From Octopus bimaculoides (lineage: Eukaryota), in contig NC_068986.1 in NCBI RefSeq assembly GCF_001194135.2, positions 66,079,478 to 66,143,477 on the forward strand: DNA of 64,000 bases, read 5' to 3'. The stretch's first letter is position 1, and the number at the start of each line of letters is the position of its first letter. Below, piece after piece: positions 48,001 through 51,000 of this stretch. Below the pieces are notes generated by a model. That model did no database searches. It had not been told where the DNA came from and saw only the letters and a list, made by a program, of their open reading frames with translations. The translations under genes and the position numbers were made by a program.

Positions 48001-51000
48001 ATCACATCCTACTATTGAAAAAAAAATATATATATAGGATTGTATAGCCTTAGATACACCATCTGAAGTAGAAGACAAGGTGGTCACATATGGAATGTAC
48101 TGGATCAGTAGATTGCTTGATCATGATTAACCTGGAGCTAAACAACAACACCAGCAGTAAAAGCAACAGAAACGGCCAATACATGAGCTTCTAAAGAATA
48201 GCTTGACCTGCTTGAATTAGAAACTAAATCTTTCTTGAGTCATGCTACTAACTTCAAACAGACATCAGAATAATGTTGTCTTCTTATGGAACATCTTTGG
48301 TCACAAAGCTATAACCAAAAGGTAAACAACCACAACAACAATTGTAATGATTATATAAGACAATGATTGAAGTTAAGTTACAGGATTATTAACACCATAG
48401 TCATAAATTCAAATGTTAATTACAAGAGCCATCTTTGTAATTTATCTGCACTAGCCAAATATGATTTGATATAAATAGCTGAACATTTTTCAAAAGTTTA
48501 TGATCATATGAAATAGTAGAGGATATTCACTGAAATGTTTGATTGAGCTTATATAAAAAAAATTCAATAGAACAGTTAAGAGAATTGGATAACATAAAAA
48601 AGAAAGCATGACATGACAGTCTGTTGATTATATACAAGCAGCTTTCTGGATGACTGACTATTTTGGATTCAGTCAAGTGTAGAGAACACACAGATTGTTA
48701 ATCATTTGGTTTTTTTTAAGGCCTAGAATTTTAGTACTAAAAGGAGGGGATTGAGCAGTTAGGCATTAAGAGAGCTAGTGTGTCTACTAAAGTATGCTAA
48801 GAATGTAAGAATGTACCTCATAAATATCTTACAAGTTAGCTAGTGCTGCAGTGTAAAGAAGTTTGAGAGCAGTAAATAGATTTTTACAATAGATTTATGC
48901 TTCATACTCCTGAGTAATAAGGATTGAGTTTGTTAAAATCAACTCAGCCATACAAGGGGTAGCTATTCACCACATCACTGCTCAATTTCAATTTTCTAGA
49001 GGAAGTAAAAGCAGTGTTATTACTGTGCACTTTGATCAAGCAAACCTATAAACAAATGACATTAAAACCCAGTCTATTTCATCTTTTCTTTTTTTTTTTT
49101 TTTTTTTTTTTTTTCGGTGTCACAATTGAGACCTAGTAAAACAAAAGTTCATCTAGAACTACATTAACTAATGCCCTCCCCATTTTGAAAATGGTAAAAT
49201 GCAATTTTACAGATTTTACTATTGCTTTTTGCAGAATGAACAACCATATAGAGATTTCTTGATCGGGGTCTACTTCCACTAGGGTGCCTAAATTTATAAG
49301 GCCTGAGAAGGTGGTTTCATATATGCATGCCAAGAAATTGAAGTATTTCACCAACTCAACATTTTTCATTTGATTATTAAATGGGCAAGGAAGGTTTATA
49401 CTTTTTGAAGCTAACAAAAGTCCTTTGGTTTCCACTACATTCAGGTTTTTGTTGTTACATCAACAACTGTTTCTTCTATAGTTGGCCTGATAACAGGCTT
49501 AAAAGTATGACACTGAATTATTTCACTGATCCACCTTCTCATTCTTCAGCAAGATACTATTTTGGCAAATATTTATTTAGTCTTTTCCTAATGCAAAACT
49601 GCAATGCAACAAGATCTTTGTAATTATAATTAACTTCAAGGCATTGTTAATATTTTGTATTTTGTTTCCTTAAAATTTTTTTAAAAAACAGCAGTTCCTA
49701 TACATGTCCATACTTGTAAACCACTCTAAGCTAGCTCCACTGAATAAACTGGAATAGAAAAAGAGAATTAAGAGCTGGGTCAGTCTTTAAACAATCATTA
49801 CTACATTTTGATCCTGCTGCTACAGTTTATGTTGATTTCTTGCAGCCAGTACATCTCTATCACAAAAGCAGATATTAAAGGAATTTTAAAATCAACATTT
49901 TAGCTATAACCATCATATATTCATTGCTTAGATTCACCAGTTTATAGATGGGAAGATGTCTGTTGAAAGAGATTTAACTGCCATACTGACCAAGTTGGAC
50001 AACAACATAATAGTTCTCCAGTATATATAGATAACACTGAGACAATGATACTGTCCAAAAACTCAAGCACAAAGACTACTAATAAAGTTGGTGCCCAGGT
50101 AATTATTCACATGCACAAACAGTAAACAAAATTAAGTTTCTTCTAATATATATGTAATGGAAATTTTACATAGAAAAATGAGATTATCCATACAAATTCT
50201 AAAAATGGTCTTTTTACAAACAGTAAGGGAATAACATTTCCAGTATGCAACGCTTGCATACATAAATAAACAGACATAATAAATAAGATTTTAATATAAA
50301 TTTTTCATTTTTCTGAGAAGCAACTGGAAAGAGAGAATATACAAAGGGATGCTAAAAAGTTCTTGGCTTTCGGTAAAAGAAAATACAGAAGGATCATTTA
50401 ATTATGATTTCATTCAACATATTCCCCTCCCAGATTCAAACACTTATTGCAGTGATCATTCAGTATTTCTAAACCTTGTAAAAGAACTCAGATGGTTGGG
50501 CCTCCAACCAGGCCTTCAACAACATCCTTAAAGCCAGGCACTTTTCAGCACCCCTCCTATATGTTATATGTATTCTAGTTCAAATGCAAGATTTTGATTT
50601 CTAAAAGTTCATGATCTGCCATAAGTACCAGGACATGCCGTTACACTAACGAATAGAGTTGAACAAATGATGCTATAGTGCTTACCTTGACAATTCTGTC
50701 GAGTTGCATCTCCAAAGAAATTTGCTTCGCAGTGTTCGCAGTTGAAACCAGTGGTGTGGAAATGACACTTAAGACATTCTCCGGTCCGTGTGTCACAGCT
50801 GTCAGGGATCCTATGGTCAATGTTACCATTGCAATCACAAGACTTACAAGTTCCAAGATCAGCAGAGCCAAAATAATTTGGAGCACAAGTGTCACAATTG
50901 AGACCTAGTAAAACAAAAATATTTATACTTATATTATATACACACCTACAGATATGTACATACTTAAGTGTATATGCATGTGCGTGTGTGTGTATATATG

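Follow-up and report, generated by a model that had tools for sequence, protein, structure and literature searches.

A short insert in an intron of an octopus laminin beta gene carries a copied splice site and looks like a patch from two neighbouring templates

Short insertions templated from other sequences are known from DNA repair and from reverse transcription. On the repair side, DNA polymerase theta (Pol theta) makes insertions of 2–35 bp whose template can be neighbouring DNA or can lie many kb off (PMC7454005), and multi-template, microhomology-mediated insertions have been reported (PMC8421209). On the RNA side, class 1 templated sequence insertion polymorphisms (TSIPs), mediated by L1 ORF2p, have a target-site duplication (TSD) of at least 5 bp and 10–40 untemplated A's, and may stem from intronic RNA (Onozawa and Aplan, PMC5110952), and chimeric retrogenes such as U6-L1 arise by template switching of the reverse transcriptase of a long interspersed nuclear element (LINE) (PMC2104539). 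For laminins, the truncated product LaNt alpha31 is made from LAMA3 by intron retention and intronic polyadenylation (PMC9788559). In this study, we examine an insert in an intron of a laminin beta gene of Octopus bimaculoides, in a stretch of 64,000 nucleotides that we call the window (NCBI RefSeq assembly GCF_001194135.2, contig NC_068986.1, positions 66,079,478 to 66,143,477 of the forward strand) and whose numbering is used throughout. Judged from its sequence, the insert looks like a one-off copying accident, in which about 70 bases were assembled from two sequences no more than 2 kb away.

The host intron (47819–50685, minus strand, phase 1 in the gene model) is, apart from the insert, unique in the window. 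The core of the insert is a 30-nt segment at 49117–49146 (minus strand), identical at 30 of 30 positions to 50889–50918 (minus strand), and the match extends by 0 nt on either side. The latter is where a laminin-EGF exon of 219 nt has its 3' splice site, as supported by the gene model, the translation, a match to Pfam EGF_laminin, and homologs. In gene sense the copy reads TTTTGTTTTACTAG|GTCTCAATTGTGACAC, which is 14 nt of intron followed by 16 nt of exon. The sequence was thus copied out of the exon junction and into the intron, over 1.77 kb and in direct orientation. Even when three mismatches are allowed, the window contains no third copy, and 100 dinucleotide-preserving shuffles gave an expectation of none. 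No other micro-duplication of this kind is present in the window, where the remaining exact repeats of at least 18 nt all fall within copies of transposable elements.

In gene sense, the copy is followed by CG, by a pure run of 26 A's, and by GAAA, and the whole unit stands between two AGATGAA repeats. On the plus strand these parts are the downstream repeat TTCATCT (49078–49084), TTTC (49085–49088), T26 (49089–49114, the A26 of the minus strand), CG (49115–49116), the copy itself, and then a G (49147) followed by the second TTCATCT (49148–49154), which is upstream in gene sense. The A-run is the longest homopolymer of the window, the next longest being 15, and the source of the 30-nt copy did not template it, as that source continues with TTGTGC. 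The AGATGAA pair brackets the insert as a TSD of at least 5 bp does, and a 7-nt flanking repeat no more than 5 nt from both ends is expected by chance at 0.4–0.6% of random positions. A first-pass annotation of this DNA had already described the exact duplicate with its 14 intronic and 16 exonic nucleotides, its distance and orientation, the 26 A's, and the direct repeat, and all of these hold. The complete identity of the copy and the uninterrupted A-run point to a recent, unselected event.

The A-run side of the insert has a counterpart as well, which is new relative to that annotation and which we noticed after the fact. The 11-mer TTTCATCTTTT joins one flank base to the 7-bp repeat and to TTT. 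Across the 128 kb of both strands it recurs exactly once, at 51094–51084 on the minus strand and 166 nt from the source splice site. The insert continues as TTTCATCTTTT-C-T26-CG-GTG and the other copy as TTTCATCTTTT-G-T8-GTG, with a single interruption at the same offset in both, and the GTG after T8 is how the source of the 30-nt copy begins. The 20-mer TTTCATCTTTT[C/G]TTTTTTTT occurs only at the insert and at 51075–51094 (minus strand), and in 0 of 100 shuffles. At the insert, the R-like motif consists of TTTCATCTTTTC (49077–49088, plus strand; the flank T, the downstream 7-bp repeat and TTTC) together with the T-run. The candidate second template, TTTCATCTTTT G TTTTTTTT GTG at 51071–51094 (minus strand), is inverted with respect to the source splice site, with a (TG/TA)n block between them and a distance of 152 nt. 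Compared with the source region, the R-like piece of the insert is in inverted orientation, and the 30-mer in direct orientation. A match of this kind is estimated to arise by chance with a probability of 5e-4 to 5e-3, which is not zero.

The candidate second template sits inside a copy of a repeat of about 165 nt, R, found at 51047–51210 (R51), 53957–54119 (R54) and 19370–19560 (R19), all on the minus strand, and also at another O. bimaculoides locus (L001, 295–415). R is unclassified; it has the core GAAGAGCTTAGGCTYGAAAYGT, ends in TTTCRTCTTTTGT5-8, and is embedded in TG/TA microsatellite, and all three copies of the window share the orientation of the laminin gene. All four copies carry a run of T5–T8. 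At the interruption, R19 carries a C; immediately after the run, R54 carries CG and the copy at L001 a C. Given these variants, the R family could account for every non-T base on the T-run side of the insert. Outside the 11-mer, the flanks of the insert do not align with R (Smith-Waterman p 0.2–0.7). The first-pass annotation had placed the insert in an interrupted repeat, and no such repeat was found around it, the flanks being unique in the window. We likewise rejected an insert inside a known repeat or an interrupted old R copy, given that the host intron has no other match in the window and that the flanks are not R-like.

These relationships change how the origin of the insert can be read. 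The first-pass annotation named both a micro-retrocopy and a local templated repair insertion, and both remain in play; its premise that a TSD plus poly(A) is the signature of target-primed reverse transcription (TPRT) is no longer safe here, because the flank base, the 7-bp repeat, the TTT, the interruption and the T-run all match TTTCATCTTTT-G-T8 only 166 nt from the source of the copy. The tail and TSD side of the insert may have been templated by DNA, in which case the hallmark of retroposition would be a mimic.

Our leading explanation, to which we give slightly less than an even chance, is that the insert is a young neutral scar of a single error-prone repair or replication event, in which template switching of the kind described as break-induced replication mediated by microhomology (MMBIR) or fork stalling and template switching (FoSTeS) used two neighbouring templates, possibly with a Pol theta-type polymerase. 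A free plus-strand 3' end at the intron site, ending in ...CTATTTCATCT, would anneal through 8 nt of microhomology to the sole match in its vicinity, inside the R repeat 2 kb away (51087–51094). TTT-N-T(n) would be copied at R51, with the T-run slipping from 8 to 26, and a jump of about 180 nt to the opposite strand would then lead to the copying of 30 nt across the 3' splice site of the exon (50889–50918). On rejoining its own locus upstream of TTCATCT, the strand would copy those 7 nt again. Such steps would yield a product resembling a TSD, a copy and a poly(A) tail. The three sequence relationships, with their positions and orientations, are observed, and from them we infer the order of events, the polymerase and the slippage. 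If the insert arose in a single composite event, whether by template switching or by TPRT, the site before insertion would have read ...CAGTCTATTTCATCTAGAACTAC....

Several features are consistent with template switching. The microhomology at the switch from the locus to the second template is 8 nt (TTTCATCT). Under MMBIR/FoSTeS, templates are expected close to the insertion, at times more than one and often in inverted orientation, and the source splice site is 1.77 kb away in direct orientation while the second template is 2.0 kb away, inverted, and 152 nt from the first; two templates no more than 2 kb from the insert, one of them inverted, are typical of template-switch events. Template switching accounts for the origin of both pieces in cis, for the inverted piece, for the position of the interruption, and for the apparent TSD. 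An extrachromosomal circular DNA or a hairpin skip as the origin of the junction between the two templates was also considered, and was rejected on the orientations, which do not fit.

A number of observations weigh against template switching. T26 has no template, as R copies carry T5–T8 and the other runs of the window do not exceed 15, so that an unusual slippage of +18 is required; R51 has a G where the insert has a C, and lacks the CG. The GTG shared by the second template and the source splice site is present but interrupted by CG, the junction from the source back to the locus has 0 nt of microhomology and one extra base, and both ends of the 30-nt patch have 0 nt. Three junctions carry 1–2 extra bases and no microhomology, whereas about 90% of the junctions of microhomology-mediated templated insertions (MMB-TI) have at least 1 bp (PMC8421209). 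For the CG and for 8–9-mers spanning the junctions, the search for templates returned only chance-level matches. The A-run stands exactly where an RNA tail would be expected, on the 3' side of a transcribed fragment in sense orientation, and the unit as a whole lies between the two copies of the 7-bp repeat, as in the classical signature of retroposition. The match to R51, in addition, is post hoc, with the chance probability given above.

The strongest rival is LINE-type TPRT with a jump to nascent unspliced laminin pre-mRNA at the locus, which we consider a serious possibility, at roughly one chance in three. In this scenario the plus strand would be nicked at TTCATCT/AGAAC and its 3' end would prime on a poly(A) tail (A26-G-AAA); the reverse transcriptase would add CG, jump to the tethered nascent pre-mRNA and copy 30 nt, and the product would be joined with one extra base and a 7-bp TSD. 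The insert would then be like a class 1 TSIP or a chimeric retrogene. The best argument for an RNA tail is the pure A26, which has no template anywhere in the window and lies on the 3' side of a transcribed fragment in sense orientation; the flanking repeat of 7 bp (p about 0.005) also speaks for TPRT. Extra bases at every junction without microhomology fit template jumping by a reverse transcriptase with non-templated addition (PMC2881922), and also fit chimeric retrogenes (PMC2104539). Class 1 TSIPs, for their part, have a TSD and 10–40 untemplated A's and can stem from intronic RNA (PMC5110952). L1-Tx1 LINEs and U-L1 chimeras have been recently active in Octopus vulgaris (PMC13282606).

On the other side, TPRT must treat as coincidence the match to R51, which comprises the 8-mer, the TTT, the interruption at the same offset and the T-run, all 166 nt from the source splice site; although A26 is present and was not templated by that source, the run, its interruption and the 8-mer match TTTCATCTTTT-G-T8 at 51075–51094. 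A polyadenylation signal 10–20 nt upstream of the tail is absent from the donor: neither AATAAA nor ATTAAA occurs in the 30-mer or in the 40 nt upstream, where the only candidate is a TATAAA 33 nt from the break. The inferred nick site, with ATCT/AG, is a poor match to the endonuclease target 5'-TTTT/A-3'. We found no documented precedent for the capture of RNA from 1.77 kb away, and random cellular RNA would almost never stem from the same gene. The window holds no other poly(A)-tailed insertion and no poly(A)-type retroposon; the tails of its short interspersed nuclear elements (SINEs) are GTAAAAGAG-like repeats, and the elements with a reverse-transcriptase domain are an RTE-like LINE and one that we read as Penelope-like. 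By a rough bookkeeping of likelihoods, template switching and TPRT are within an order of magnitude of each other. Two other RNA-based origins were rejected. A processed retrocopy or pseudogene would derive from spliced mRNA with its natural 3' end, whereas the copy includes 14 nt of intron and stops within an internal exon, after 16 nt of it. For a cryptic polyadenylation event in the pre-mRNA where the fragment ends on its 3' side, the weak TATAAA 33 nt upstream is the only candidate signal.

Long homopolymers are prone to breakage, and the TTTCATCTTTTC-T(n) tract may already have been part of the intron when a break at this fragile run was sealed by end joining. The patches captured would be the 30 nt of the splice site and TTCATCT from about 35 nt away, plus an untemplated CG and G, and the slippage of +18 would no longer be needed. 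Pol theta insertions are known to combine distant, nearby and direct-repeat templates (PMC7454005). We regard this as unlikely, given that the flanks beyond the 11-mer lack homology to R, that the R-like 16-mer and the nearness of R51 to the source splice site would both be coincidences, that a run of 26 nt is far outside the run-length distribution of the window, and that no patch shows microhomology.

An artefact of sequencing or assembly is more improbable still. The source is a gapped draft assembly (36% GC in the window) built from short reads, long homopolymers are hard to assemble, and five N gaps interrupt the window, one of which (51573–52521) has duplicated flanks with 97% identity. 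Against this, two precise chimeric junctions would be required for a 30-bp island to come back to its own locus with 7 bp duplicated, the nearest gap is more than 2 kb from the site, and no adapter-like sequence is present. The flanks of the 949-N gap at 51573–52521 (51412–51556 and 52522–52666) are 145-nt copies that are 97% identical; this duplication in (TG/TA)n looks like a product of scaffolding or gap closing and not biology.

The copied splice site raises the question of function. The first-pass annotation had proposed that it is a decoy acceptor, giving either a poison exon subject to nonsense-mediated decay or a secreted, coil-less beta short arm with a poly-lysine tail. The frame that it gave is borne out by the gene model and the translation: in the phase-1 intron, splicing to 49132 would read G-L-N-C-D-T-E-K8-E-K-M-K-stop, with TAG at 49074–49076 after 19 codons, so that the hypothetical pseudo-exon frame spans 49074–49132 on the minus strand and translates into 19 residues. 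In favour of use, positions −14 to +16 of the copied acceptor are identical to those of the real one, no stop interrupts the frame for 19 codons, and short-arm laminin products are possible, as LaNt alpha31 demonstrates (PMC9788559). Beyond this, the sequence lends the proposal no support. Within 930 nt downstream there is no usable donor, the best GT scoring 5.9 compared with 11.1 and 12.7 for two real donors of the gene (approximate scores, from an approximate donor matrix), and none of AATAAA, ATTAAA, TATAAA or AGTAAA occurs there. AG dinucleotides lie directly upstream of the copied tract. The analogy with LaNt also fails on its route, since LaNt is made by intron retention and intronic polyadenylation and not through a decoy acceptor. 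Translation in the pseudo-exon frame would use 24 of the 26 A's for eight AAA (lysine) codons. Two reports describe ribosome stalling and frameshifting on A-runs in coding sequence (PMC7295572; 10.1101/755652), and these 24 consecutive A's would be expected to stall ribosomes. The intact copy and pure A-run, in turn, speak for a recent, unselected event. A used and selected decoy is consequently very improbable in our estimate. Most likely the copied acceptor does nothing, and we see no sign of its use in the sequence; any use would be predicted to give a transcript with a premature stop. A recursive splice site was rejected, as AG|GTCTCA is a poor donor, and the analysis of branch points was uninformative in this AT-rich intron. 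Equally remote is the combined scenario in which a LINE reverse transcriptase switched from a poly(A) tail to the host nascent pre-mRNA and the acceptor it planted now serves for a poison or terminal exon, either reducing full-length laminin beta or producing a short arm without the coil.

The surrounding gene, on the minus strand, has laminin beta-1/beta-2 as its named homologs, the best of which are 57–61% identical, and its Cys-rich exons match Pfam EGF_laminin (PF00053, PF24973). The 219-nt exon (50904–50686) is of phase 1 at both ends, encodes a laminin EGF domain and reads (G)...NCQ; the exon before it ends in ...GGATATGCAG|GTAATG, and the exon after the host intron begins at 47818. Exact look-ups of the two open reading frames (ORFs) adjoining or overlapping the insert returned no match, nor did a metagenome DNA scan with the insert flank or a protein-guided scan with the exon. 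A scan of 47000–52000 with Rfam, at E-values up to 1, found no structured RNA at the insert. A structured RNA was rejected on these grounds, as the Rfam matches were to microRNAs and small nucleolar RNAs (snoRNAs), far below gathering scores, and all within 50884–51565. This TG/TA-rich segment upstream of the exon drew sub-gathering matches to mir-297, mir-3149, mir-466 and other microRNA models and to a few snoRNA models, which we read as artefacts of its composition. A fragment of a mariner-type transposase (Pfam Transposase_1) lies at 52989–53438 (minus strand), within the intron upstream of the source exon.

Other elements of the window include a SINE family of about 400 nt (58930–59340, 59845–60300, 57470–57790 and 63060–63400, with fragments elsewhere). 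It carries a GGTTCAGTCCCAC motif that resembles a B box, has TG/TA microsatellite in its interior, and ends not in poly(A) but in a GTAAAAGAG-type tail; two of its copies, 957 nt apart, are 90% identical. Two retroelement fragments on the plus strand carry an RVT_1 domain. The one at 20210–21622 is an RTE-like LINE, whose endonuclease ORF shares 77% identity with a 'craniofacial development protein 2-like' protein of O. bimaculoides. The other, at 23678–25326, has a GIY-YIG-like motif as read, is probably Penelope-like, and includes a tandem duplication of 258 bp, in which a core of 213 nt is exact (24467/24725). Inverted, near-identical segments at 2600–3600 and 38800–39200, about 36 kb apart and with exact stretches of up to 52 nt, probably represent a further transposable element, present twice in opposite orientations.

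Overall, the insert looks like an ordinary mutational scar with an instructive anatomy, and neither like a new exon nor like a clear-cut retrocopy. It offers a clean and datable case of a few dozen bases patched from neighbouring templates. It is also a caution that retroposition can be overcalled from a TSD and poly(A) alone if a template for the A-run side lies nearby. Were the reverse-transcriptase reading right, the insert would be evidence that the machinery of LINEs can capture nascent host RNA in cis. Under either mechanism, an intron received a duplicate of a functional splice signal, and such duplicates are raw material from which new exons can be made.

How the insert compares with described systems differs from one to the next. 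Like LaNt alpha31, the hypothetical product of the copied acceptor would be a truncated laminin short arm without the coiled coil; however, LaNt alpha31 comes from an alpha-chain gene by its own route, and here there is a putative cryptic acceptor without a donor or a poly(A) signal. With class 1 TSIPs (PMC5110952) the insert shares its flanking repeat, a run of A's not templated by the source splice site, a transcribed and possibly intronic donor, and an intact donor site. It differs from them in lacking a cryptic polyadenylation signal 10–20 nt upstream and a TTTT/A target, in having a donor in cis only 1.77 kb off and a tail side that matches a nearby repeat, and in its 30 nt, compared with roughly 70–400 nt in the experimentally induced insertions of that work (PMC5110952). 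Chimeric retrogenes made by LINE template switching (U6-L1; PMC2104539) likewise join two unrelated templates head to tail with a 3' poly(A) and a TSD, whereas in the insert the 3' part would be the tail only and the 5' part an internal, unspliced piece of host pre-mRNA. Among the DNA-level systems, theta-mediated end joining by Pol theta has a tract length (2–35 bp) that suits the 30 nt, and a terminal microhomology of 2–6 bp that is absent at the source splice site. With MMB-TI, MMBIR/FoSTeS and Pol theta insertions together, the insert has in common patches of about 20–30 nt from nearby DNA, several templates with one inverted, 8 nt of microhomology at the first switch, and a return to the locus with a small duplication; it differs in that its templates are 1.8–2.0 kb away and not within 100 bp, that three of its junctions have extra bases in place of microhomology, and that its homopolymer would have expanded from 8 to 26.

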